A stretch of DNA of 64,000 bases from Ramazzottius varieornatus (taxonomy: Eukaryota > Animalia > Tardigrada). The notes under the pieces were generated by a model. That model searched no databases. It was given only the letters and a program-made list of their open reading frames with translations, and was not told where the DNA came from. The stretch is from positions 2,297,663 to 2,361,662 of the forward strand of contig BDGG01000003.1 of the NCBI GenBank assembly GCA_001949185.1, in the 5' to 3' direction. The position numbers and the translations under genes are program-made. Shown piece after piece: positions 7,294 to 25,800 of the stretch (position 1 is the stretch's first letter; each line of letters begins with the position of its first letter).

Positions 7294-10200
7294 ATGCCTC
7301 CTCCACTGAAGCGGAAGAAGGCTGACGCTGGATTAGAGCGCACGTCTCCAACTTCGCATGCAGTGACCGAGGATGAGTATAGCGTAGTCTATAGTAAAGG
7401 TAACTTAAAAGAGCAATAACTTGATTCATTGATTGCTGCGCAATTTCGGTTCGATTCCCCAAACCGTAGCTTTTCTTGGTTTGTTCCAGGTGAAAGCGTG
7501 TGGGCCTATTGGAAGGACAAATGGTTCCAGTCTAAAATTATGGGAACTTCATCCTGTCGTCATCCTCATGACAAGAACCGATCCGTTCTGGGCTACAAGG
7601 TGCACTACGCAAACTGGGGATCCAAGTAAGTTTCCGATATCCTAAATTATTGTGTTTAGGCTTCGGTTGATTATTGATCGAGAGAAGCTGTATGCTTAAA
7701 ATACGGTACAGTAAAACAATCAAACTGTTGAAGAACTCAGTAATAAAAAATTCAGACTTTGGTTGTACTCGAAGACCGAAGTCACGAACAGCTGACAAGG
7801 GATTTACGCCGGTCGGTCCACTGTGATCCTCAAACCAATACGACCGAGAGGTAGAGGGGAGTTTGCTCCACAAACTGAGGTAGACTGAATCGGCGGAAAA
7901 ATCCTGCAATAAAATACGTCTGTTTCACTGCACGCTCTTGCATTCGCCCAATTTCACTCCGAATTGGCTCAAACTATGCCCAAAATTCAGAAACGTGGCT
8001 GTTTTTCTAGTTTTCTATCTGGTGGTACAGTTTTCATGTACCCTGCATGGTTTCATAATGCAGCGTATTGCCTAAAACACTAGCAACTAATTTAGGCCGC
8101 TCCTTCCCCGATCTCTGTATGCGCTGCCACATAGATCTTCGAATTCCTGTGGTACTTTTCTCGATAGTCACAAGGGAGGAACTCGACAAGGTTCGTCCCA
8201 GTTCCCTGCACTATTTGAAACTTGGTGGTTCAGACCTACTCGAACTTCACCTGTTTCGCTGATCTAGTGTTTCCGAGGAAATATTTTCCCAGCGGACCGT
8301 ACGTTCCCAAATTCCCCATGTAAAGCTGTAGACCGTGTTCGGTGGGCTAGATATTCCCCGAAAGTTTGGTGCACCACTTTGGCGAAATCAGCCTTACCAA
8401 ACAAACGAGCTCCAGAACTTCCCCGGTACCCGCATAGCCTTGGGACAGTGCAACCAAACTGCTCGAATTTTTCTGCTAGTTTTGCAATTCCTCTGTTGAG
8501 CACCTAGCTGGAACGAAAGTTCAAGAACAGAACTGCATTTCGCTCGGAGTAGTGGCCGCATTCCTAAAACAGTTTCACCAGGTGTATCACGACTTTGAGC
8601 TGGCACAGCAAATACCTGGTAATTTAGAAATCTGACTGCAGATGCAGCAGATCGGTCTAGGTTTGGTAGATCGGTTCGCTAGAAACCGAAGCCGAGAAAG
8701 CACTACTGTCACTAACTAGTCGAGCTCTTCCGGCTCGGATTTCACAAAAGACCGAAAAGTGGCTGGTGTACTGAGCTAGGTTACGGGTTTCAAGATATTT
8801 AGTCTGCAAGCGCGAACCGTCAAAGTCGCGACAAACTTTCTGTTTCCTGGTCGACATCACTGGACATCTAAAAAGAGATCCGGTTTGAAATCAGAGTTTT
8901 ATAGTTGCTCTTCTGCGCTGCCCTTTTCCGTTCTAATAATCGACAAGCTGCGAGCGAGTCGAAGGCGAAGCGAACAGCTTATAGCATGGTAATTCATGAT
9001 TCATAAAGAGTTCAAATGACACGTAATGTGACTAACCGTAGATTACACTTGTTTGTACAAGTTGTGTGTTAACTACTTACGGTAAAACTCTGCAGCGATT
9101 CGTATTCAGGTGCTTGCCGGATCTCTGTTGAAACGACAGGCACCTCATGTACGTGCATACGTATACCTTGCACAGCGTACGTAACGTACGTACGCGTTTT
9201 TCGACAGAGTCTTTGCTTCGGGCCATTATCACTCTACTCTTGGTAAGATCGGCACAATCAGGATTCGAAGGGGATGATAACATCTACGTCCGGACCCTGA
9301 TAGGTACCGATGAGTCCGGCACGAATCCGATGCCTACAGTTTAGAGTAGGAAACTCAAAAGTGCCATGCGCTGGCGCGCGGTCACGACTCAAACCGTCAA
9401 ACTAGCGCCCTCATGACTTCCCGTCGGACGTTTCTTTTATCCAGAGCTGATTGAAACCCGAATGCCATCCTGAAATGACTGCTGAATATGCGCTCATATT
9501 TGCGAATTACTAGTTCGCTAACAATTCTTGGTAATATGTCGAACCGTAGGTGTGAATCGTGAAGCACACCGTGGCAGATTCAGGACCTCCTGGAGGACGA
9601 ACAGCTCGGAACTTCCGTTGCACCTTCTGGACACAGTGTCTTTTTGTAGGTGTTCTGTAGTCTGAGTGATGTCTGATCCATGTTCGTAATGAAGTAAGGT
9701 GGTTGATTTATGAACCCAGGTTTGTAAATCCTGTGTAGAAGAAACTCCTGGATTTGCAGGACGGAAATGCAAATGGCTATTTAGTTTGCGCATCACGTCA
9801 CGTCTCGTAATGTCAAAGCAAGTACGTTCGCATCGCTCAGAATGTATACAGAGTGTTCCAGCTTCAAAACTTGAAAATCAATCAGTTTTGACTGCACTGC
9901 TGGCTATACCCACACAGCTTGAGATCTGCAGCTTAATTCCTTGATTAAATCAGCTGAAGTACTGTGTAAGCGTAGAGATGGGATAAGTGTGATTAAGTTC
10001 GGTGTGGTATTTTCCGATTTGGTAAACTCTCACACCGAATCGAAAATTTCAGTATGAAATCCACCCCGATATTTTTGATTGGGTAAATTGCTGCACCCAA
10101 ATTTTGATTTATCACACCAAATCAAACCGAAGAATCGGTAAACCGAAAAATATAAAGTTTCTGTTATTAACGGGAAAAACCAGGTAAAACTGGCGCAAAA

Positions 10201-13200
10201 CGGGGCGAGCCGCAAGCGTACAACGTTTGGCGTGTCTTGAGATGTTGGGAGGTTTTCCTCCACCGGATGGCTGTCTATCAAGCTAGCAGAAATACAGTCT
10301 GTAAGCCGAAAACGTTCTCGAGATCGCTCAGAAATCTGTCAAACTCTCATCTTTCTGGGCCTTTCGGTATGCTTCAGTTTACCGAAAAATTTCGATTTGG
10401 TGTCGGTTTGGTGCGAACGCACACCGAAATCGGCTTTTCGGTGTGAGACTCACACCGATAATTTCGGTTTCGGTAATTTCTCATACCAAATCGATAAGTT
10501 CGATTTATTTACGGTAAATGTCGGTGAATCACACTTATCGCATCTCTAGTGTAAGGTATGTGCATGTAACTTCGGCCTGTAGCTTGGCGGGCCGCGCGGT
10601 GAGCGTTTAGCAGGCCGGGGCCGAAATTAAAGCCAAAAAGGGGCACAGACGGTGTGCCGGAAGCTCACCGCTTGGGAAGTCGTGGGGTCTATCGTTGGTG
10701 AAACAGAGCTCACCAGGAAATGACTTATTGGATGTGGCGTTCCTAAATGTTTTCAGTAATGGACAGATCAAATGTTTACAAATCTGCTCACCATGCTGTG
10801 TGCCTGAAGCCAATCAGCTGATCGGACGAACGGTTTATTATGATAAAGTATAGCGAGAACAGCGAACTGATCGACCGCCTATGGTGCGCTTCGTGTGGTG
10901 AGCAAGCTCGGGTTAGAATCGCTGTTCATTGCCAGAAGAAGCGATTATTACATCTGGGATGCTGAGGAATGCCCTGCTTTAGCAATGGAATAACCCTGGA
11001 AGATAAACTGGACTGAGAAGCGAACTGGTGAAACACCGATGTTGTACCGTTTCCCAGGAATTTGAATTAAGTTTACTCCAGTTCGAAAAGAACTCCGTAG
11101 CCTGCCGAATTCGGTGTCGGCAATGGGGTTGCACCTGCCCACGACGAAACCTGTCGGTCAGCGTGTCGTTGACGTTCGATGACTGGGTTTTCAGTCTAGA
11201 AATTGAAACAATGAACGACACATCAGACTGCTTGATGCAACTGTCCGAAGCGCTTACTCATCCCAAATTTACCCGCGCGCCATCAATTTCCAGATTTACC
11301 GAAAGTTAACACCGTAATTTGGACATACGAAAGAATTTTTCTATGTGTAAAGGCTGGAGCACAATAATCACAGTAATCTCGAGCAGAATATGGTTTAATA
11401 AACCCCGTGAACTGCGACCAAGGGGTGTTTTTCAGCATTACAGGCCGTAATGCTTGAAAAATAGCATTGCCTCGCCAACCAATGGTTTTAGATCCGTTTA
11501 TCCTGGAGTAGAGAAACGTTTCCGCTATTGTCCCACTACAATTACTCTTTGCCAATCCTTCGACAGCTGAATGATTATGATCGTTGTAGGTACGACGAGT
11601 GGGTGATGAGCGACTGCCTGATGGCACGGAGTGCAGAGAACGACCTGCGGGCGAAAGCGGAGAATGAGGGACGCCTGGAAAAGTGGTAAGTTTCAAGCTG
11701 TAAGCTTATGGTCAAATGCTAGTTTAGTTAAGGCAAGGCCTATAAACTATATCTCAAAGTTGTATCAACTCCTGCATTGAGGTCCGCGGACAACCCGATT
11801 TGTATCAACTCAGTTTATCCAGAACACCTGGCCAAACGAGAATTGTCCGTTTTCCTTGTCCAGCTTTCACAACACGCCAGCGCTATGGTGCTTACTTTGC
11901 TTTGACTGAACTAGGGAGTGCTCGGTACACCGCGGCGAACTATTTCCTTCATTCCTCGCTGACCCAGCGAAAATTTTACTAAGGCGGTGAAAAACGGTGA
12001 AGAAGAAGAATGGTGAAAGATGTGTATGTGTTTCATTAATCGATCAATTACCTTGTTCTGTTGACTGGGATGCGATCAATCAACCAAGGTAGAAATGATC
12101 GAGCAATCAATGGAACACGCTCACATTTCACCATCCTCCACTCTTCTTCCCTGTTCTTTACCGCGTCAGCGGAAAATTCACTGACGAGGGGATTGGCACC
12201 GTCCTCCCGTCTTGATTCAGAAACTGAGACGGTAGAAAGGTAGAGGAGAGTTTTCTCCATCGACTGAGACAGGCGGAACCGGCGGAAGAAAATCCTGGAA
12301 GACACAGCAGCAAGCGGAAGTGACGGCAGAATCTGGGCGGTGCATGGCTATTCCGTTAATCAAGAGGTTTAATTACCTGATGGATGATTGGCGTTTTGAA
12401 TGACCAAACTGCACTGTATCGCGTAAGATCAGCTTGTGTTCACCAAAACGGTGCGCTTGCTGATGTATACCGTGGACATTCTTCCATCTTCTTCTTCTTC
12501 ATAACTCGAGCAACTGTCGATATGGATTCCGTCAATCCTATGAACATTCGCAAGCTTCTGGAGACGGAATAAGAACAGCACTTCCAGTCAAGCGACACTC
12601 CAAGTGCAGCAGATCAGTTGTTGAAGACGCTCACCAAAGGTACTAATTATTACTGGTGATGTTCGCATTGTGGAATATACGGGTTGATTTTATTCTTTTA
12701 GGATTTCTGGGAACTCATATCAGCCAGGGTGGCTGTCCAGTCTTGGCTACCGAGGAGGACTTGCAATACGAGGTGCCGAATAACTTGTCGACATTCGATG
12801 AGTCGGAAAAGTCCATTGCAGAAACCAACCTGTTGAATGGTGATACCGAAGATGATTTCGAGGCTGCTGCAGACGACCGTCTCACGAACTACGAACCTGC
12901 ATCCAACGAAACTGAGCCGTCGTCGCACGAGCTGTTCTCCCCTAGAATACCGGATCCCAAAGTTCCATTTGACCAAGCAGCCGACGTTGACTACAAGGAA
13001 CGGGCCTTGAATTTCTGGACTGAGCCAGTCACCAAGAAGCGTCGCAGTCTGTCCAGCGTCCAGACTAAATTTAAGAAGGTCACTAGTTTACGTCAGCTGA
13101 TCGAATGGAAGCGACAGTTAGCCGAAGGAGGTTCACGAATCGATAAGCTGAAAGCGATACGTTTGGAAACGGGAAAACAGTTCTTCCTCGCTAAGCAGCA

Positions 13201-16200
13201 ACCTCACGTCATAACAGACATGGACATCCAGCGATGGGCAAACACAGTAACCCGAGAAATCGGTCTGGTTGGCTTTACGGCTTCGTCTCGGTGGGCTGCG
13301 AAATTCAAACGGTATGTGTGAGTCGAGAAACAAATACGGACACTACCAAGCGAAATGTCATCCTATTGTTCTCTCTTGCAGACACTATGGCATTTGTGAC
13401 AGGAAGATCGCGAAGTTCGTCACTAAACAGTATCTCAAAGAAGAACCGGAAATGAAGAAAAGTGCGGATGAATGCGTTGCTCTAGTCAGATCACGCATTC
13501 AAGCCTATGGAATGGACTGTCTGAGGAACGCAGACCAATCGGGCAACGAATATGAGATGCGTCCAGGTCGAACTCTGGATTTTGTCGGCGCAAAGCATGT
13601 TTTGGCACTAACCCGGTCACAGAACTCGATGACCACAGCTATATGGTGATGATGTGCGTGTCTCCAGGTACTCGAAAGTTTCTCCCAGTTCTCTTCCTCA
13701 CGCTGCAGGAAGACAAGGGTGTCTTTGGGCCGATCGTGAAACGAACCATGTTCAAGGCTAGCAATCTGCATGTCACCGCTTCGACTTCAAGCAAGATGAC
13801 CAAGCATCTGTTCATCGAATGGTGCGAAAAAGTCTTCCCGCGTATGAATGATCACTGTATATTTCTAGCCGATTCTTGGCCGACGTTTGCTGATCAAGAC
13901 GCTGTGGAAGAAGTCAGACCCGAAGAGCTGGAGTACGAGATGATCACAATTCCGCCTAAAGTAACCGGTCAAATCCAGCCACTTGATGTCCTCTGTTTCC
14001 GCATGGACAAGGGATACTACCGAAAGATTTCCAACTGGATATTTCTGAAGGATCAGCCGGTTCAAGTCCACCACCGAGACGTAATTCTTAAGCTTCACTC
14101 TTTGATCTAGCGACAGTTTACTTCTCCCAGGTTCGAGAACCTGATTGCTCAAGCTTGGCGCTTATCAGAATACACTGACAAGTCCTTCACGTATGTGAAC
14201 CCTACCGAATACTGTTATGACGGACTTACTGGCCATTGTGATCGTGATAATTGTAAGCGCTCTCTGCTTCTCAAATGCGGTTGGTGTAAGTCTCCTTCGT
14301 GCTTCCATCACGTTTACGAAAGATATCACTTCTGTAAAACTTATCTTCCTTGATACTTTCGGCTCAAATTTTGTTATAGATCGAACCGGTCTGATAAACC
14401 AGCCATGTACCGCCCAGATTCTGCCGTCACTTCCGCTTGCTGCTGTGTCTTCCAGGATTTTCTTCCGCCGGTTCCGCCTGTCTCAGTCGATGGAGAAAAC
14501 TCTCCTCTACCTTTCTACCGTCTCAGTTTCTGAATCAAGACGGGAGGACAGTGCCAATCCCCTCGTGAGTCAGTGAAGACTGGTGAAAACAATTCACTGC
14601 ACTGAGCCATCCCGAGACTGAACGATGACAAAAGAACCTAGAGACCCTACGCTACCTGGGAGTTTTCAGTATTTGATATCCACGTTGACAGAGTGTTAAC
14701 AGAGCGGACCTTCATCGGTATGTGGAGCCTGGCTGATAACTTGGGATATAGCAGGCGTTCACGGTAATACAGTACTTGAACGGGTCTGATGTGTGAAGTT
14801 CGGTGTGTTTGAGATGGGATATCTGCCAGGTGATGCATATACGGAGGCCAAATCCACCAGTGCAAAAGCGATAACAATCAGCGCTGTTCCGATACAATTA
14901 TTTTAATGCATATTTTAATGTATTTTAATGCATAATGCAGAATTTAATTCCGATATGGTCCGCTGTAGCCATAGACTTAACATGGGCGACCGGATTCGAA
15001 TTAGTTCCGCTGTCGTATCGGAACAACACTGATAACAATACTGTAATGCATCATGAACTTGGCGAATCACGTGATCGTACTCGTAAACTTCACCCGCCGG
15101 GCATCAGTTTTTTACACTCTGTCGAATCAACAATCCACCATACACTCAGCTACCGCTGGAAATATTCAGCGCGGCAGGTTAGTTGTCTTCTATAGAAGTG
15201 GAACTACATTCAAAGGTGCAGTCAAGATCCTCAACATTCTCGTCAGCTAGCATTTAGAGTGGCTCAGGCAAGATACTGGCAGCGACAAAAGAGTTTTCAA
15301 CAGTGGACGTTTTGGTTTTAGACCAGGCTTCAGACACGAAGTAGAGAAACTCTTGGCACGATGGCTTCTTCAAGTACCCTTTCTTGGTATTTCCGTGCAC
15401 TTGTCCCTCCACTCGTGGTAGGATTTATTCAGGTAACACTTAAACGGATAGTTAACTTCAACATAAAGAGGCTGGTACTTGCCCGTCAGCCCTAAAAATT
15501 TGCTCCATTTCCTTGTTCTCCAGCAAAGCTCGACTCTCGTAACTCAGGTGCGCGGGTGCGTGGTCTCGAAAAAGGTAGCTACCTTTTTCCTTCTCGTCAA
15601 ACGTGGACTCAATCCACTGGATATCCAAGCTCGACTGCCACCCACCGGAAGCTGCAATTACCTAATAACATAATATTATAGTCGAATTGATTTTCGACCG
15701 AAAATGCTGTTTGACAGAAAAAACGAAAAAGCCGCACTTGTACTGAAAACCACCACACTTTCGGGAATATCCAGCTTTTTCAGAATGCTCTAGGATAGCT
15801 TGCCGGTCTTCTTATTGCCCTTAAAAATCACCACGGCCGGAAATTTATATCCGTCCGCGGCAATGGCCAGGCCCACTGTGAAGTTTTCTTTCGGTGCATT
15901 CGGATCGATCACCGTCACATCTTTTACTCCCTTCGGCGAAAGAGTCTTCTTGTGAGTATAGAAGGCTCGGCGAAGCTAAAATAAGCCGTTTTAGCCGTTC
16001 TTAGCCGTTCTTAGCCGTGGCTAAAAATATTTTAGCCGCGGCTAAAGCAGCTAAATTACCTTTGGCCACGGCTAGAATGTATTGTGCGTTCGAATGATTT
16101 ATTGATGCTAAAACTATTTCAGCCGACTCAACATCAATAAATCAATCAAACATACAATACATTTTAGCCGCGGTTAAAATATTTTTAGCTACGGCTAAGA

Positions 16201-19200
16201 ACGGCTAAAGCGGTTTATCTTGGATTGGCTGAGCCTTGAATACTTGTGAGGATTCTGGAGTTTCACAGAGGTTTCGTCGAAATTGATCATTCTGCAGGGC
16301 GGGGTATTGTTCAGGGTTACGATTTCTTCGACCATATCCAGAGACTGAGCCTCTTTTTCCTAAAATTAAAATAGGCATTTCGCAGACGCATGACGTCACG
16401 CCATAGATGAAAAGAAATGAGGACGGTTTACATCCTGCTGTTATTCATACTTGACGTCACGGTATTCACTATTTGGTATCAAAACATAAGCTTACAATGT
16501 CTTCCTCGGTCATGCTGAATTTCCTTCCTACGTGCGTAGGAGACCGTTACACTATGCTGTGTGGTTTCTGGTACCTGTAAAGCTAGCCCCTGGTGGCTTT
16601 ATAGTCTTTGATTCCCCTTTCTCTGGATACCGGTAGAGCGATTCGTTGGATGTCACACTCCTGAACTCCCTGCACTGTTTTCCAAATTTCTTCTTCCATG
16701 TCCGACAACAGCGGCTCCTTTCCACCTGTGATCTTCGCTGGCAGTCTGATCCTGAAAGCAGGAAGGTTTCAAAGATGGATGTTGAAAGAATAGGAAAAAT
16801 TTTACATCCACCGGCGAAGCGTAGAATCCGGAATTCCATGATCTTTTGCGAACTTGTGCAATGACATTCCAGACTTTGAAAACGACGCCATACTGCGGTT
16901 CGCTTCTTCCTCTCCATAAGTTTTGCGCTTTCTAGTTTTCACCGCTTTGTTTGCAAAAAACGAGAAGACCTAGTCACTGGAGTTGAACATCAGCCGAACT
17001 CGAAAAGTGGTGTTACAACTTCGAAACGAGATTTTGAAGTCCGACCCTAAAGAACGGCAGTTTCATACTGAAAGACCTTATTCTTCCAGGAAGATTACAG
17101 AGATCACGATAGACGCGGCGTAATCGGCGAACTGGGTAGAAGAAACTTCTAGAGTAACAGAAAAAAGCAACGCAAGTTACCGACTTCCGCCAAGCACCTC
17201 ATTTCGAAATTCCAAGCTTGCAAAAAAACATTGGGTGGCGAGATGTCCGCAGACAGTCTTGTCCTTTTCGTCCGCTAGTCCCCTGATCCCTGCGCTTGAC
17301 GTTCCACGGAAGTTTCACGTTCGTTTGACTCTTTCTGTATTTGGGAAACTGTTAGTTTGCAGGGCTTCGTGGTTCTCAGAATCACCATCTGCTCTTTCAA
17401 ATTTTTGATTTTGTTTGTTGTATTTTTCGGTCGTGTCACTCATATGGTTTTGTTTTTGTAACAGTGCTCGTGCACCGAAGTCAGGGAACCTGGCAGAGAA
17501 GCCAGGTGATGCTGTCAGTGATGGGAGGGACCTGCAAGTGGCAAACAAACCCGCACCGGAAAAGAGACTGAAAGGTATGCTGATCAAATCTTTCTTAACA
17601 CTCTGCGTACAACCGTCCTCTTTGTGTATACAATCACTCAGTTTTATTCATCTCCCAGTTTTAGCTTTTGGTCTCTCGGGTTTAGGTCTTTTTGTTTGCA
17701 TGTACCTCGGTCTTCTCTCCAAAGCAACACTAATGACCAGCGGTCAGCAGAACCCCAGCACGCTGGAAATGTTTTCTATGTTTTCGGGTGGTTTTGGTGA
17801 AATTTGGTGTTTCGTCTCTTCGCGCGAGACACGTGCACGGTATTCGCTTAGAAAAAAACTGGAGCACTGGGGACAGTCTTATCTATCGAAGCCGAGCCTG
17901 GGATAAATTTTGTAGTCATCATTGCGGTCAGAAGAAAACTAAGACGGCCGGTTCTCCATTTTGAGATTTGGCGTCATGACCTGCCAATTATCGGAATTTT
18001 AAAAGGTTGAAAATTGCCTGTTGGTTGGACCTGCCTCTGCAACACGGTAACAGCCAATAAGATTCCTTTGTACACAAAGAGGACGGTGGTATTCTGCAAA
18101 CATGAAAACGATCGTGCTGAAAGTGTTGACTGTAGAAGAACGTTCCAAATTTCCTGCATTTCGGAGTTCCCTCCGTTGTTCAGACATAAGAAATTCCGAT
18201 TTAGACCGGAACTTTGCGTCTTTCCCACCTGACGTTTCTTTGCTGTTACCGCATACCGTAGCTCTGCTGGAGTTTGATACTAAATCTAATTATCTAATCA
18301 TAAAATTCATTCGGTGGCCACACCCCGTGCGTAAGTCGATCCAACGTGCACTTAGGAATCGAAGTAGCGAGGCTCGCCGATAGCTATCGGCTTGAGCCCG
18401 TTGTTTCTCGTGCTGAGTAGCGCACTGCCCTGGTGCTGTTCGAGATCACTGCACGTCCTGTTTGTCTTTTCAGAAGAACCGAAAAAGGAACCGAAGAAGG
18501 AACCAGCAGTGGAACCATCTCGCCCTGTAACTCGGAATGGCGGACAAAAACAGCGTAAGGAAGGGACTATTATGTACTCTGAAATAGAAAAGGCCGTTAG
18601 TACCATGATCAGTAGTCTACGTAACGAAATTCCAGAAGAGTTCGCAGAGAACATTTTGTGACGGTTTTCTAGCCTTTAATACGAACTTGTGTATATTAGA
18701 ACCTTATTCCATATTTATCAGTCATTCTCATAATAAGCAAGCTGTTAGCTTGAGTAATATTAACGGGCATTGTTTTCAGCTGCTCAAACTCCGGAGAGCA
18801 AACCACAGAGAGACGTTCCTCAAGAGGCATTACCGAAGAACGCGCAAAAAGAAGTCCATGTGGAACTTTCCGAGAAGAAACCGAAGAAGGAAGCTCCTGC
18901 TAGCGGTTCCGAGAAGAAAATGGAGAAAGACGGTCCAGTTACGAAGACCGACAAGAAGGCTGCCGTTCCAGCTGCAGTCTCTCAGTCGGCTAAACCAAAG
19001 AAACCACGAGCCGACTCTCCAGAGATCGAGTGCTTGGGCTCGGGGACCTTCACCGCGTTCCACAGCGACATTCCAGCCGAAGAGGAGGAAGAGATACCGA
19101 CGCCTGTCGTTCGTACCAAGAAGACTAAGCAGGTGAAACGACTGAGCGGTTCCACGAACCCAGTGAAGTCGACGAAGGAAGTCAAGAAGGAAGCTCGGAA

Positions 19201-22200
19201 GTCAACGAAAGCAACACCGACGAAACCACCGCTGAAGAAGCCTGCAGCGGTGAAGCTTCCAGTCGCAAGCAAAGTGGTTTCTCGCGATTCTTCGCCGGAG
19301 ATCTCAGCTCCTCCGAAGCCACCGAAAAGACTTAAAGTCGATGAGAAAGTGGTGAGGGATACGTTGACCGAGTCCATAGCAGAGACGGTCGCGTGGGAGT
19401 CGAACTGCACGCAATGCACTTCCCAGCAGCAGTGCAAACTACACGCTGCAGCTAGTGCCTCGGGGTATTCCACCAAGACTAACGCGCGTGAAGTCATGAA
19501 GGCGGCTGGAGAAGCATCGAAGGAAGTACCGATATACACTACTAAGACTAATGGTTAGTCGGTTAGAAGTAATTCAAGACACCGGCAGACGAATTCATCC
19601 AGGTCGCTGTCCCAAGTGGCGCACGTTTTCGTTGTTAGTGGTCGAAACCGGGCGTCACTCAGGGAAATGCTCCTGACAAACTCATTTGCCGAGGCTCCCT
19701 TTGTGAATACCGGTATTCAGTCTGTACTCGTACTACAAAACCCTCGTCCTTCAGGTTATTTATTGGTTTAACCGTAATGCGCTGTTTTACCAGGTTCTTT
19801 GATTGTGAAGCCTTTGCCAGTTCCAAAGACGCTCAAAGAAGCCACGAAAGAACCTGCGAAAGTTGTTCAGAAGTTGACCGGAAGCTCTCCAGTCGGTCCA
19901 AGCACCACGTCAGCAGTAACCAAGTCCGCGAAGCCGAAAGAACTGAAGTTGGGCGACAAAGTCGTCGCAGTGCAAGTCGTCGACACCCAAGCGACCACCT
20001 CGAACAGCCTTATTGGTACAAAGCAAATTTCGGTGAATGGAAAACAAACCAAGTTAGTGCTCAAATGCGCTCCGGCTAAACGCGAAGACAAACGTTCCCC
20101 CAGAGATGTTGTTGCCCTGAAGTCTATTGTCAAAACACCGGTCAAGATCTTCACAGTCAAAAGCGCGACGAGTTCGGCTAAGGGAGCGAATAAACAGAAA
20201 CCTAAGGGGTGCGTGGTTACGGGAACGAATACCCAACCCACGGCTTCGGTGGTCATTCCACTGCACCTGGCATCTCCAACTCAACTGAGTACTCCAGCGG
20301 GGCAGCTGGGTACTCCAGTAACGGCCAAGTGCTCTCCGACTGTGACAACGAAGATGGCAGTTGGTAAAGTCGCACTTCCCCTGAAGGCTGGCGTTACGGT
20401 GGGGCGATCGAGCCAAGTTCCAACGGTGTTGAAGAAGTCACCAGCAGGTTTGTTGTGTTTTGTTTCATTTTGTGACGTGTTTCCAATTTATCAAATTCTT
20501 ACGTGGTACTCATATTTGGGATGTCGGGAAATGAAGTGTGCATGATCGTTTTCTCATGTGGCGCACATTCTCATTCTTATTGGCTGTGCGCCACTTACAA
20601 TTGAACGACCATGTATTCATGTCCAAGTCACTTGACGACATCTCGTTTCGCCAGCTTTTATCGATTGTTTCTCGAACTAACCCAGACCAAGACTTCATTA
20701 AGATCGGAAAAACTAGTTTGGTTTTGTTTTGTGTTTTAGCTACTGTGACGCCTCCAGCGAAAGTGCCGCCTGCTCCGGTCGTGGTGAACCCGGAAGAGAT
20801 CAAGCGGAAAGAGAAGGGAGAGAAAGAGAAGGAGAGATCTAAACAGGTGGCCGCCGGACTGATTTCTCTCTTGGCTGTCAGTGTCAAGGCCCCAAATGCC
20901 ACGGGGATGTTGGCTAAGGCGTTTCAGGAAAAGATGGCATATGCCGATGAGGAACTCGACAACGTGTCGAGAGCCGGTTTGCACCATATCTTCGTGAAAC
21001 ACATAGCTTTCGGGACGATCTCTATTCGTAAACAGGCAGATGAACGGTGGCTCTTGTCAGAAGAGCCTCATATGGCTGCTGTACCTTTCTTGAAGTCTCT
21101 GACGACTTATGCCATTCAAGGACTGAACATCCGTAAATACAGAATTTCGATATAATTGTTAGATACTAATTGATTAATCATGGGACATTTTCAGGTCTTC
21201 ATCCTTCCATCCAGTCTCTAGGTGTGCATCGGCAAGTGAAGCTGATGTTCGAGATTCCCGAGACGTTCTTGCAGTCTCATAGTGCTCCCAATGACACCAC
21301 CTGTATGCTACTTCGCTTCTGCCAGAACAGCGGAGAGCTACCGGCTCCGGAGCGCCATCCGCGAAACTTGGTGCTGACGCTGAACTACGGACAACGTCTC
21401 ATCGAACATTTGGTACGTGCACAAACGTTCAAGTTCGGTTTCGTTCGGTACGTACGTGAAGTGAGTATTGTCGTCTTGAACACAGTCTGCAATTACGCTT
21501 ACAGGAACACGGTGACTCGAGCGTCGAGCAAACGTTCAAGCGCTTCTGCTCACCAGTGGAAGTCCCGAAGGCTCTGCTGAAGAGCCAAAATCAGCTGGTC
21601 ATTGAGTGGACGGACTGCTTCGACATTGTTGATCCTGCCAAGGTAAGTTGAATACAAAGCTTTCTCATCACCAACAGCGATTTCATCGTTTTGTTATCAC
21701 TGGCAGGATTTCCTCCTGTTTGTGGAGTTTGCAGAACGTCAATCGCAGGCCACCATCTTGGAAGAGATTCAAGCACGAAAGGTTGAGATCGGAGACACAG
21801 TCGCCAAGTGTAAGTATTTCCATTTGAGGAACAGTTAATGATTTCCAGTAATTACTGATATTTGGGTTGTTTTTTGCAGTGCACAGCCTTCTAACGCCTA
21901 TGAACGCTCCAGGCGTCAAAGAACCCATCCAGCCATCCATGATCTTCACGCTTCTCTGTCCAATGACTAAGAAGCGTCTGACGATACCTGTTCGCTCCCG
22001 AGCTTGTCAGCACAACGAATGCTTCGACGCTCCTGCCTACCTGGCCGCCAACGCAGCGTCTCGTTCAGCGTGGATCTGCCCACTGTGTAACAAGATTGCC
22101 CTGCCCGAAGACCTCGTCTTGGACGAGTAAGTCTCGTTACCTTCGTTCACTATTTAGAAGGACGCAAAATAAACTGAGACAGGATCGGTTTTTTCAAGTG

Positions 22201-22537
22201 GCGCACGTTTCCAGCCAGTAACACTGGTAAAGTGCGCCGCTTAGGAAAACAGTCTTGTTTGTCGAGTTCACTTTCCTTGGATGTGTCTGATGACTTTTCT
22301 TTTACTTATAGGTACGTGGAACTGCTTCTGCGCTTCTCCGCCATGGACAAGCTAGAGGTGGTTCGTGACGGGTCGACCGTATTCGTGCGAGAGATCGACC
22401 CGAAGCGTCCACCCAAGCTCGTGCCGAAAGCCGTCGAAGGTGCGCCGTTGAGCAGTCTGAGCTTAACTCAGCTGGTTCCTCAGTACCGAACGGCTTTGTC
22501 CACCAATGGTACTTTTGTGATCAACTTTCAACAGTAA
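7294..22537 (+). CDS. Chromo-barrel (Tudor-knot) + Lys-rich linker + PINIT + SP-RING: PIAS/Siz-type SUMO E3 ligase fusion, ~1093 aa, 13 exons
   Basis: Phase-compatible GT-AG exons: 7294-7399, 7490-7625, 11590-11685, 17465-17574, 18474-18554, 18780-19553, 19794-20447, 20740-21132, 21195-21412, 21505-21642, 21707-21809, 21880-22126, 22312-22537 (3282 nt). Exons 1-3 give KGESVWAYWKDKWFQSKI...YKVHYANWGSK|YDEWV (chromo barrel). Exons 9-11 give LLRFC...HPRNLVLTLN...KRFCSPVEVP...NQLVIEW (PINIT). Exon 12 gives LLCPMTKKRLTIPVRSRACQHNECFD...WICPLCNK (SP-RING). The domain calls are strong; the 11685->17465 join is inferred. Confidence 0.75.
9260..9760 (-). pseudogene. Degenerate pogo-family (DDE_1) transposase remnant A
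   Basis: Minus-strand fragments FITNMDQTSLRLQNTYKKTLCPEGATEV, RDRAPAH and IRAGLIGTYQGPDVDVIIPF carry the three catalytic-Asp motifs, broken by frameshifts and stops. Confidence 0.75.
9973..10548. mobile_element. hAT-type MITE (~576 bp)
   Basis: Terminal inverted repeats TAGAGATGGGATAAGTGTGATT / AATCACACTTATCGCATCTCTA. Interior is rich in CACACCGA/TCGGTGTG and ACCGAAA subterminal repeats. Flanks GTGTAAG(C)G and GTGTAAGG form a near 8-bp TSD. Confidence 0.8.
12185..14565 (+). mobile_element. Tc4/Tc5-like (pogo superfamily) DNA transposon, copy 1
   Basis: ~165-bp near-perfect TIRs (12185-12349, 14401-14565) starting CGAGGGGATT, a 3-bp TGA TSD on both sides, and an internal spliced transposase. 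Confidence 0.92.
12522..14353 (+). pseudogene. Tc5-like transposase pseudogene, copy 1 (2 introns)
   Basis: Introns 12640-12701 and 13312-13381. HTH region, NADQSG/LADSW/QPLDV and C-terminal CGWC...CFHH...HFC are present. Disabled by TAA at 12570, indel(s) near 13635 and TAG at 14108. Confidence 0.88.
15254..16920 (-). pseudogene. Degenerate pogo-family transposase remnant B, interrupted by a MITE
   Basis: Minus strand reads SGMSLHKFAKDHGIPDSTLRRWM (HTH), MINFDETSVKLQNP|HKKTLSPKGVKDV...ENFTVGLAIAADGYKFPAVVIFKG, RDHAPAH, GLTGKYQPLYVEVNYPFK and TKKGYLKKPS...VSEAW...NSF. Contains stops and frameshifts; the third catalytic Asp appears as Tyr. Confidence 0.85.
15957..16242. mobile_element. Palindromic MITE (286 bp) with 8-bp TSD
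   Basis: Ends TATAGAAGGCTCGGC / GCTGAGCCTTGAATA, TTAGCCG/CGGCTAA subterminal arrays, and a perfect TSD CTTGTGAG (15949-15956, 16243-16250). Removing it restores the pogo reading frame. Confidence 0.9.
19574..19700. repeat. Palindromic element, copy 2 (intronic)
   Basis: CCCAAGTGGCGCAC...GGCGTCACTCAGG...CATTTGCC. Confidence 0.75.
20516..20630. repeat. Palindromic element, copy 3 (intronic)
   Basis: TTGGGATGT...AAATGAA...CATGTGGCGCAC...GTGCGCCACTT. Confidence 0.75.
22154..22280. repeat. Palindromic element, copy 4 (intronic)
   Basis: TTCAAGTGGCGCAC...GTGCGCCGCTTAGGAAAAC. Confidence 0.75.
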
Positions 22538-22825: not shown

Positions 22826-25800
22826 CTACCGACGAGCTTGTTTATTTTGCTTTTCTGATTCAGCCGCTGTCTGTTTTGTGGCGACATCTTCTATCTCTAT
22901 TATTACGTCTTGGTCACCGACGGTTTCACCGGGCTTGAAGTTTACCTTTTTCACCTGTAATAGTGAAATTACGTAAACGAAAAGTTTTGTCGCATCGAGC
23001 AGAATTGTAAGAAGGGATTTACCTTGCCAGTTACCGCTGCTGTTAGTCCATTCTGCATCTTCATAGCCTCGATCACGCAGACTTCCATTCCTTCCGATAC
23101 CATATCGCCAACAGACACTGCTATCGACTTCACTAGTCCTGGCATAGGTGCGAGTCTAAAGAAGAGTAGGTTAGACATGAGGTGCCGGCGGAAAGTTAAA
23201 GGAATGTACCGTACTGCCGTTGCCTACATACTTTCAGGCGCAACCTCATCGTGAAAAGAAAGTATGCAGGTTCATGACATACCGGCGAATTGTGCGTGGC
23301 CGTCCCTCAGAGTACGATTTTCCACACGGAAGACAGCATAACAAGGTGGATTAAGAGAAACCCAGACTTACACTTGTCGACTAGTGTCGGCGACTTTCTT
23401 GGCCGGCATCCAGTGCAGATATTTATGAACATCTTCCTGGTAGACATGAAGCGGGAATACTGAACCCAGGTACTGCAGCTCGATCTTCCCCACTGCATTG
23501 CGACTGATCAGCTGCAGGACTCGTTGTTGACCATTAACGGTCACCCGAATGACTGGATCTGCTAGGTTGATGGAGTCGCTGATTTCCAGTTCCGTGTCCT
23601 GGATCCTGGCTTTGAACGTCTTGGCGGCTTTGTTGTACTGTACGGATACAGGCTCGCTGGTCTCCCCGACGCGAATCTGCAATCGATCTTGTTACGGACT
23701 TGATCAAGACGAGAAAAGATAAGGAGTTATTACGTTTAGATTATAGACGCGTTCACGAGATGAGTGCTTCGATCCTTGTGTGGAGTTGAGGAACTTTCGG
23801 TCACGAAGTTTATCGGTAACGTAAAGGCAGCCGGCTACGATGGCAAGAATTTGCTTTTCTTTCGCTTCCAACTGTTTCCCACGGAAACCATTTGGGTAGA
23901 CGGTGGGCAGGTAGGCTGTGTTAATGTCGCCCCTAACGAACCTATCGAAGAAACCAGCATGGAAGATCGTTGTGCGGTTCACAAATCCAGGAATTGCTAC
24001 CTTTCAGGCACCTGCATACACTTCACCGCACGTTTAGCGAAGTTCTCGCGTACTCAGGTCCGAGCAAAAGCAGAAGGCAGCAGAACACGGCCTTGATTAC
24101 CACTCTATTGTGGATCAAGGCTGTGTTTCCTTAATACTTTCATCAAAAAAGCACGAACCTGTCTTCGGTGACGATGTCTCGTAAGAGGGGAATGTTATGT
24201 GTAACACCTCGGATGACATATTCGTCAAGCGAGTCGGCAAGGAGGTCCAAGGCATGCTGGCGGTCTTTGCCAACGGTGATCAGCTTGCAGATCATCGGGT
24301 CGTAGAAGAGACTGATCTCAGAGCCTTCGGTAATACCCGTATCGCACCGAATATACCCATCCTGAGGCACTTCCCCTATGGACTTGTTCTGCGGTTCTCG
24401 GTAGACCTTCAGCCGACCCACCGAAGGTAAGCCAAAGGCTTTGAAAGGATCCTCCGCGTACACTCTTGCTTCGAAGGACCATCCGTGGATCTTGATGTCG
24501 TTTTGTGTGAAACGGAGAGGGTAACCACGAGCTGAACGTAACATGTGGTAAACGATATCGACGCCTGCACCAAAAAAAACCCATAATTTTACAGCAAGCG
24601 TATCACTTGAGAGCTCGGCAATCAGACTGTATCACATTGTTTTCCTACGTGACGTACGTTCTCGATGATAATAGCTGGAAGTGTACGTCACTTGCAGAAA
24701 CGATGTGGTCGAGCTCGTTTGCCGTGCTCCCATTTTTAAGGAATGGACGCAGCGTACCTGTGATAGATTCTGTGATGGGATGCTCGACTTGTAAGCGAGT
24801 ATTCATTTCGAGAAAGTAAAAGTTCTTGTGCTTGTCCACCAGGAACTCTATGGTCCCCGCGGAGTCATATCCGACGGCTTTGGCCAGAGCCACAGCTTGT
24901 TCACCCATTCTCTTCCGTAGTTCCGGATCGACAAACGGACTGGGCGCTTCTTCGATCACCTTCTGGTTTCTTCTTTGAATGGAACATTCGCGTTCGTTCA
25001 GGTAGATCGCGTTTCCGTGCTTGTCCCCGATCAACTGAAAGCAGTTTCAGGGTCGTACGCTAAGGTGGAATTAGATTGGTGAAAGTATGTAAACATACCT
25101 GGACTTCGATGTGACGGGGTTCTTCGATGTACTTCTCAATCAGCATCCGATCGTCGGCAAAGCTGGACTTGGCTTCTTGCTGGGATAACCTGTAACCGTC
25201 CCGAGCTTCATGATCGTTCGTTGCGATACGCATGCCTTTTCCACCACCTCCGGCTGATGCTTTGATCATCACAGGATAACCGATTTCCTTTGCAAGTTGA
25301 ACGCAATGGTCGGCGTCCTAAAAAAGGTCATTAAGAAATGTTACCAAATTAGTCTCTACCAGTTATCATTCGCAAACTTAGCTGGTAGCTTACTTTGACT
25401 TCCCCTTTGAAACCTGGAATGGTGTTCACTCTAGCCTTCACGGCCAACTCCTTGCTGTGAATCTTGTCCCCGAGAGCGTTGATGGCAAAACTGTTTGGTC
25501 CGACGAAGGCGATCTTCTCTTTCTCGAGATGCGCGGCAAACTCTGTGAAACAAAGAAACTCCTACTCGTATATAAATCAAGGGCTTCCGGATACCTAGAA
25601 ATTCGGAAAAACATCGTTACGAGTACCTGTGTTTTCGGAGAGGAAACCATAACCGGGATGGACGGCTTGCGCTCCCGTCTTCCTGCACGCATCGATGATC
25701 CGCTCCCATCGTAGATAACTATCCGCGGTCTGCGCTGTTCCGATCAAGATGGCTTGGTCCGCCATACGGACATGCATGGCGTTGGAATCGACATCGCTGT

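Follow-up and report, generated by a model that had tools for sequence, protein, structure and literature searches.

Does the tardigrade Ramazzottius varieornatus make a SUMO E3 ligase that carries a chromatin-reader-type domain within the same polypeptide? Animal PIAS1-4, Drosophila Su(var)2-10 and yeast Siz1/Siz2 are SUMO E3 ligases with the architecture SAP-PINIT-SP-RING-SIM (SIM, SUMO-interacting motif), and how the SUMO machinery reaches particular chromatin sites is only partly understood. The question is raised by a locus at 7294-22537 on the plus strand of the 64,000-nucleotide stretch of R. varieornatus DNA analyzed here (the window), where exons for a predicted chromo barrel precede exons for PINIT-like and SP-RING domains. 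We estimate at roughly three in four the probability that this locus is a single gene specifying a PIAS/Siz-type SUMO E3 of a tardigrade clade, about 1,093 residues long, with an N-terminal chromo barrel and predicted ligase activity.

Rebuilt independently from the sequence, the locus yields a 13-exon GT-AG chain whose spliced coding sequence is 3282 nucleotides (nt) long and stays open up to the TAA at its end (22535-22537), which reproduces exactly the 13 in-phase, stop-free exons of the first-pass annotation. All 12 introns are of the GT..AG type with good consensus, and all exon phases are compatible; seven of the 12 donors start with GTAAG, the remainder being other GT variants. The motif VHYANWGSK/YDEWV is cut at 7625/11590 (split codon AA/G), and the junction 11685/17465 forms the codon TG/T. 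The exons and the layout of the predicted protein are as follows.

Exon 1, 7294-7399, plus strand: start ATG at 7294, open frame, donor GTAACT; contains a basic KRKK stretch (7309-7320) resembling a nuclear localization signal.
Exon 2, 7490-7625, plus strand: N-terminal two thirds of the predicted chromo barrel (GESVWAYWKDKWFQSKI ... YKVHYANWGS).
Exon 3, 11590-11685, plus strand: end of the predicted chromo barrel (YDEWVMSDCLM) and the next helix; covered by RNA contigs.
Exon 4, 17465-17574, plus strand: start of the basic disordered linker; joined to exon 3 in RNA contigs.
Exon 5, 18474-18554, plus strand: linker with an EPKK repeat; its first 30 nt are seen after 17574 in RNA contigs.
Exon 6, 18780-19553, plus strand: 258 stop-free codons of K/P/S/T/A-rich linker; acceptor TTTTCAG, donor GTTAGT.
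Exon 7, 19794-20447, plus strand: 218 stop-free codons of linker; both flanking junctions inferred.
Exon 8, 20740-21132, plus strand: about 100 nonconserved residues, after which the PINIT-like domain begins (VPFLKSL..., from ~21066).
Exon 9, 21195-21412, plus strand: PINIT-like beta domain; spliced as in GAU95642.1.
Exon 10, 21505-21642, plus strand: PINIT-like beta domain; spliced as in GAU95642.1.
Exon 11, 21707-21809, plus strand: PINIT-like beta domain; spliced as in GAU95642.1; exons 9-11 hold the PINIT motif as PVEVP.
Exon 12, 21880-22126, plus strand: SP-RING, with the zf-MIZ core at ~21948-22094 and all zinc ligands.
Exon 13, 22312-22537, plus strand: SP-CTD-like segment, tail, SIM-like strand TFVINF (22511-22528), stop at 22535-22537.
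Predicted protein layout: stretch resembling a nuclear localization signal; chromo barrel, residues ~36-105; linker of ~650 residues; PINIT-like domain, residues ~765-936; SP-RING, residues ~960-1008; SP-CTD-like segment; degenerate SIM-like C-terminal strand.

The public model of this locus, RvY_07228 (GAU95642.1, A0A1D1V6G0), is a "hypothetical protein" of 293 residues from R. varieornatus with 100% identity to the SP-RING exon. It spans 21245-22537 of the window, covers exons 9-13 only, begins with a Met within exon 9 and lacks the ~800 N-terminal residues of the longer frame. Very probably, this annotation extends ~14 kb further upstream, which takes the protein from 293 to ~1,093 residues and the gene to 13 exons. 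The linker gained in this way is highly basic (K+R 0.16-0.27; in exon 6, K+R 0.19 and P+S+T+A 0.40). Exon 7 has no Met in its first ~190 codons and is thus hardly translatable by itself. The first ~100 residues of exon 8 (20742-21040) are more hydrophobic than the linker, with helices predicted at low confidence; they have no counterpart in the Hypsibius exemplaris ortholog described below and no family match, and a single-sequence AlphaFold model of exon 8 reached a predicted local distance difference test (pLDDT) score of only 51, which makes it uninformative.

Transcript data connect the two halves of the gene. They consist of contigs from R. varieornatus RNA-type runs aligned to 11585-17580; the RNA label of the runs is a guess, and we argue for their RNA origin because a GT..AG intron has been removed and intron words are nearly absent. 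The joint between 11684/5 and 17464/5, which skips 5779 nt with GT..AG borders, occurs in contigs of two studies. This is the junction on which the first-pass annotation had made its one-unit claim depend, and its presence supports the proposed union of a chromo-barrel N terminus with a PINIT/SP-RING module. Upstream of 11590, contigs from three studies continue with the last 29 nt of exon 2 (two runs) or its last 27 nt (one run), and one contig reaches 168 nt upstream of 11590, equal to exon 2 (136 nt) plus 32 nt, a match by length and not by letters. Downstream of 17574, contigs of two studies continue with the first 30 nt of exon 5. No alternative joint departs from exon 3 in the RNA contigs over 11585-17580. 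The first-pass annotation had considered that exon 3 might be spliced elsewhere, or that a separate promoter near 17-18 kb might drive the PIAS part; as far as exons 2 to 5 are concerned, the contigs decide for the fusion.

Further downstream, a fraction of 0.54 of the words sampled from 17465-22537 is present in the RNA runs, and exons account for a fraction of 0.58 of this stretch; expression of exons 9-13 alone would give about 0.2, so the long exons 6 and 7 must be in the RNA. The junctions E9/E10, E10/E11, E11/E12 and E12/E13 are identical to those of GAU95642.1. The E8/E9 intron is only 62 nt long and cuts through the PINIT domain: the last 22 residues of exon 8 align to residues 368-389 of the H. 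exemplaris protein BV898_05300, and exon 9 resumes at 391/392 without a gap. We are confident, taking these data together, that a complete 13-exon mRNA exists.

The C-terminal module is readily placed among the SUMO ligases. Exon 12 matches the Pfam zf-MIZ family with an E value of 2.9e-18 (65.8 bits; cut-off 33.5) and PIAS2 in the PDB at 5.2e-15, and a phmmer search with the 293-residue protein returned PIAS2 (4fo9; 1.7e-19) and PIAS3 (8.3e-19) over residues 18-245. The PIAS2 alignment extends through the PINIT part and into the start of exon 13, with PVEVP standing opposite PLNIT of PIAS2, which bears out the proposed divergence of the PINIT motif. The SP-RING zinc ligands C163, C179, H181, C184, C203 and C206 (numbering of the 293-residue protein) are invariant in 22 PIAS-type sequences, and flanking invariant residues are also kept; the SP-RING is intact, as originally proposed. 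An AlphaFold model of the 293-residue protein built with 22 relatives (pLDDT 76.8) was compared with the PDB by Foldseek, and its ten best matches were all PIAS3, PIAS2, Siz1 or Siz2, over 223-261 columns with E values of 1e-13 to 6e-10; in the same search, ordinary RING domains appeared only at E values above 1e-3. Judged by sequence and modeled fold, this is a true PIAS/Siz PINIT/SP-RING/SP-CTD module. Near the C terminus, TFVINF aligns where PIAS proteins (VIDLT) and tardigrade paralogs (VIVID, VIIIE) have their SIM cores, its acidic residues having been lost, and forms a short strand of low pLDDT in the model. No exon piece, each scanned singly against Pfam at E values up to 1, matches SAP, in agreement with the lack of this domain noted in the first-pass annotation.

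The 293-residue protein does not reach the Pfam PINIT profile, which another member of the tardigrade clade, P0107, reaches with 31.6 bits. This shortfall, the diverged PINIT motif, the degenerate SIM and the long tardigrade branches in the tree presented below would suit a pseudo-E3 scaffold that retains the SP-RING fold for binding and lacks ligase activity. However, all SP-RING zinc ligands and their invariant neighbors have been kept, and the modeled PINIT/SP-RING/SP-CTD unit superposes on active ligases, which makes a scaffold of this kind highly improbable.

The N-terminal domain is split by an intron and was recognized through the H. exemplaris homolog BV898_10226 (P0019). Residues 86-170 of this protein score 29.6 bits against MSL3_chromo-like (PF22732; cut-off 28) and 7e-4 against Tudor-knot (PF11717), and match PDB chromo barrels of Eaf3 (7e-5), MRG701 (1.7e-4), MSL3 (2.5e-3) and also ARID4A. 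Its Atlas model superposes on MSL3 and KAT8 with template modeling scores of 0.85 and 0.71, respectively. Exon 2 of the R. varieornatus gene aligns to residues 106-140 of BV898_10226 (z 11.2; 0 of 200 shuffles reach the score) and exon 3 to residues 142-166 (z 10.2; again no shuffle reaches the score), the split codon being residue 141, so that the two alignments are contiguous. A tblastn search with the BV898_10226 domain found exon 2 at 1.3e-5 and exon 3 at 7.5e-4, and exon 3 also aligns to residues 30-39 of BV898_05300 with 70% identity. This contiguous homology identifies the split R. varieornatus domain as a chromo barrel of the MRG15/MSL3/Eaf3 type. Since no exon piece matches the MRG domain of Pfam, the protein is not an MRG15 or MSL3 ortholog. 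In MRG15, the pocket is formed by Tyr26, Tyr46 and Trp49, and the Y-x-x-W spacing is shared with Eaf3 (PMC1747190). Our alignment to human MRG15 places F, Y and W at the cage positions of the R. varieornatus protein, with this spacing kept.

The combination is predicted in other tardigrades. H. exemplaris BV898_05300 (P0016, OQV20718.1) joins, in one annotated model, the C-terminal half of a chromo barrel (2.7e-4, 21.4 bits) to zf-MIZ; this model starts within the chromo barrel and is probably N-terminally incomplete. In Paramacrobiotus metropolitanus LOC129581399, a chromo-like match over the full length (1.4e-3) is accompanied by zf-MIZ, and the chromo-like match of Paramacrobiotus P0104 is full length, with 19.1 bits. 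The predicted chromo barrel plus SP-RING architecture thereby spans three tardigrade species and two eutardigrade superfamilies. Like the R. varieornatus protein, BV898_05300, BV898_10226 (OQV15639.1) and LOC129581399 combine a chromo barrel with PINIT-like and SP-RING domains, but they are shorter (483-700 residues), have other cage residues and are uncharacterized database proteins. Among the best 150 of 2,632 SP-RING matches in 1.8 billion representatives, a chromo signature occurred in tardigrade proteins only. No large ESM Atlas cluster combines chromo and zf-MIZ, which we take as a lead only, and a homolog search with BV898_10226, limited by length and shared words, returned three proteins.

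A maximum-likelihood tree of 21 PIAS-type proteins, ten of them from tardigrades, unites all ten tardigrade sequences, on long branches, in a clade of their own (97/93) that is separate from the PIAS proteins with SAP found in other animals, and makes the R. varieornatus gene sister to BV898_05300 (95/93). The suggestion that the gene is a derived paralog is therefore supported: it falls in a derived, tardigrade-specific PIAS clade. A ZMIZ or tonalli identity was considered and rejected, with neither a GBD-like ZMIZ domain nor Zmiz1_N on the exon pieces and with ZMIZ proteins as the outgroup of the tree. The best non-self match of the SP-RING exon was CAG2106647.1 (P0001) of the oribatid mite Medioppia subpectinata, a protein of 1519 residues with four tandem PINIT/SP-RING units, in which an array of tandem genes has probably been fused into a single model.

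The R. varieornatus assembly (55.8 Mb, 200 contigs), in which the window occupies C3:2297663-2361662, contains five zf-MIZ loci. The four others lie at C1:7009810 (best match H. exemplaris BV898_15676), C1:235433 (best match BV898_14551), C4:1925504 and C3:1509059, and none has a chromo exon within ~16 kb upstream. The PF22732 profile search of the genome did not pick up the split domain at the locus described here. The search for a separate canonical PIAS proposed in the first-pass annotation has thus yielded four more SP-RING loci, none of them near a SAP match: the SAP matches in the genome lie away from all five zf-MIZ loci, and R. varieornatus therefore seems to be without a canonical SAP-PIAS. 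When the genome was searched with the Pfam PINIT profile and with the GBD-like family of ZMIZ, there were zero matches, controls included, so that these searches are uninformative.

What weighs against a single chromo barrel-ligase gene concerns its transcript and its N-terminal domain. As to the transcript, we infer the junctions E1/E2, E5/E6, E6/E7 and E7/E8 from frame, splice consensus, the two long stop-free exons (258 and 218 codons) and the word share, and contigs across shared exons cannot prove that E1 to E13 lie on one molecule. In the annotation of the genome project, the model has just 293 residues, and no long model matching the gene was found in the protein database by searches limited by length and shared words. 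Under the same limits, a query with exon 7 found no match among proteins of 119-380 residues, which is not proof of absence, and the window exons aligned to BV898_05300 returned, as a query, only BV898_05300 itself. These gaps between E5/E6 and E7/E8 and the short public annotation would be expected if the locus had two products, with the chromo exons and linker forming a protein or a nonproductive transcript separate from a PINIT/SP-RING protein, and with the full fusion rare or absent. Against such a division, the 13 exons keep phase, their splice sites fit the consensus and no stop interrupts them; exon 7 has ~190 open codons ahead of its first Met; and the 62-nt E8-E9 intron splits the PINIT domain itself. 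Moreover, both domains stand in one model in the H. exemplaris ortholog and in two other proteins from tardigrades, and this is the only SP-RING locus of the genome with chromo exons upstream. Two separate products are thus improbable, and we retain the single gene.

As to the N-terminal domain, exon 2 alone scores 15.5 bits (E value 0.018) against MSL3_chromo-like, below the cut-off of 28, over profile positions 4-51 of 78. Exon 3 alone matches nothing in Pfam or the PDB, and exon 2 alone nothing in the PDB. The intron-split domain was scored exon by exon, and the evidence for its fold and for passing the cut-off comes via BV898_10226. In addition, the cage positions differ from one tardigrade homolog to the next: BV898_10226 has L/F/W, BV898_05300 has ?/Y/F, the first lying outside the model, and Paramacrobiotus P0104 and P0006 have lost them. 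This lack of conservation means that a conserved methyl-lysine function is not implied. It favors a protein of the same architecture in which the chromo barrel would bind DNA, RNA or proteins instead of histone methyl-lysine, with targeting by nucleic acid or partners. MSL3/MOF-type chromo barrels also bind nucleic acid, and Pfam describes the related Tudor-knot family as the RNA-binding knot of a chromodomain. The very basic long linker (K+R 0.16-0.27) would favor contact with nucleic acid, and the MRG15 pocket itself is partly blocked by His21 (PMC1747190). On the other hand, the cage positions of the R. varieornatus protein are all aromatic with the MRG15/Eaf3 spacing, and Eaf3, MRG701 and MSL3, which read methyl-lysine, are the nearest proteins of solved structure to the paralog's domain. 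Nucleic-acid or partner binding is a possible, still tentative explanation. That the R. varieornatus chromo barrel reads methyl-lysine may be proposed as well, but is somewhat less likely than not. The methyl-histone reader of the first-pass annotation accordingly stays a suggestion, and its statement that SAP has been replaced is an architectural reading.

For the single chromo barrel-ligase protein, a mode of action can be outlined by analogy. The SP-RING and SP-CTD would hold Ubc9~SUMO and the PINIT domain would orient the substrate, as they do in Siz1 and PIAS. The chromo barrel, on its basic flexible linker of ~650 residues, might tether the enzyme to chromatin through a methylated histone tail or nucleic acid, so that SUMO would be placed on nearby chromatin proteins; the KRKK stretch of exon 1 may serve nuclear import. 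In its fullest form, this scheme would have a tardigrade PIAS ancestor lose SAP and gain a chromo barrel, becoming a reader-writer that places SUMO at a histone methyl mark (e.g., H3K36me3 or H4K20me1), with the multiparalog family aiding chromatin protection and DNA-damage tolerance. We consider this fullest form speculative and rather unlikely.

Compared with PIAS1-4, Su(var)2-10 and Siz1/Siz2, the PINIT-like, SP-RING and SP-CTD parts are homologous by sequence and predicted fold, the ligands are kept and a SIM-like strand stands at the matching position. In contrast to these ligases, the tardigrade protein lacks SAP, has a chromo barrel at its N terminus and a disordered linker of ~650 residues before PINIT, carries the PVEVP motif and a SIM without acidic residues, and belongs to a separate clade. 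With MRG15, Eaf3, MSL3 and MRG701, the nearest solved relatives of its N-terminal domain, it shares the H-Y-x-x-W signature and the D-E-W-V strand, but it lacks an MRG domain and has a loop insertion of ~15 residues between strands (SSCRHPHDKNRSVLG). Chromatin contact by PIAS/Siz ligases has precedents. The SAP domain of human PIAS1 binds H3 and H2A.Z (PMC8496182); unlike a chromo barrel, it is a helical fold, with no known dependence on histone modification. Closer in kind is Arabidopsis SIZ1 (SAP-PHD-PINIT-SP-RING), whose PHD finger recognizes H3K4me3 and is needed for function (PMC6954211). SIZ1 is likewise a PIAS/Siz ligase with a built-in domain of the chromatin-reader type, and it sets a functional precedent for mark-guided SUMOylation; however, its reader is a PHD zinc finger, SAP is retained, and the domain of this plant protein was acquired independently. 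The literature searched contained no paper in which an SP-RING is coupled to a chromo barrel, Tudor-knot or chromodomain, nor any on PIAS or SUMO ligases of tardigrades. The novelty claimed for the combination thus holds for publications and not for databases, where the same architecture stands unnamed in H. exemplaris and P. metropolitanus, and SIZ1 is a precedent. The chromo-barrel version of a PIAS/Siz ligase is new to the literature; the built-in reader as a kind is known from plants.

The large introns of the gene have a history of their own. Within intron 3, 12180-14570 is a pogo/Tc5-type DNA transposon with terminal inverted repeats of 170 nt (98% complementary) and open reading frames matching HTH_Tnp_Tc5 and DDE_1; it makes up much of the 5.8-kb intron. 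Its repeat occurs at no fewer than 40 places in the genome (195 candidates), some of them paired ~2.2 kb or ~1.1 kb apart. RNA contigs of 95-99% identity reveal a 70-nt GT..AG intron (13310 to 13381) and a form with a 1073-nt internal deletion (12872 to 13946), and the element looks like a member of a young, expressed family. Remnants of a second pogo-like element occupy 15254-16917 on the minus strand (open reading frames 15254-15412, 15790-15918 and 16552-16917) and are broken up by inverted repeats of 46-59 nt, nested in one another, that form hairpins at 15955-16244, where contig depth of the stretch peaks. The two large introns, unusual in a compact genome, are thus due, at least in part, to young transposon insertions. 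Beyond the gene, a convergent neighbor on the minus strand (22969-23682) ends ~430 nt from the ligase stop; one exon with a biotinyl/lipoyl domain and one with PCC_BT mark it as the 3' part of a gene for the alpha subunit of a carboxylase acting on propionyl-CoA or methylcrotonoyl-CoA.

To conclude, our findings correct the annotation of RvY_07228 from 293 to ~1,093 residues and suggest a chromo barrel as a possible addition to the known routes by which SUMO ligases are recruited to chromatin, namely the PIAS1 SAP domain (PMC8496182) and the plant SIZ1 PHD finger (PMC6954211). The apparent lack of a detectable SAP-type PIAS is notable in R. varieornatus, a species in which the protection of chromatin during desiccation and irradiation is studied. 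With a natural chromo barrel-PIAS fusion predicted in three tardigrade species, SUMOylation guided by a mark or by nucleic acid could be tested in a simple system.

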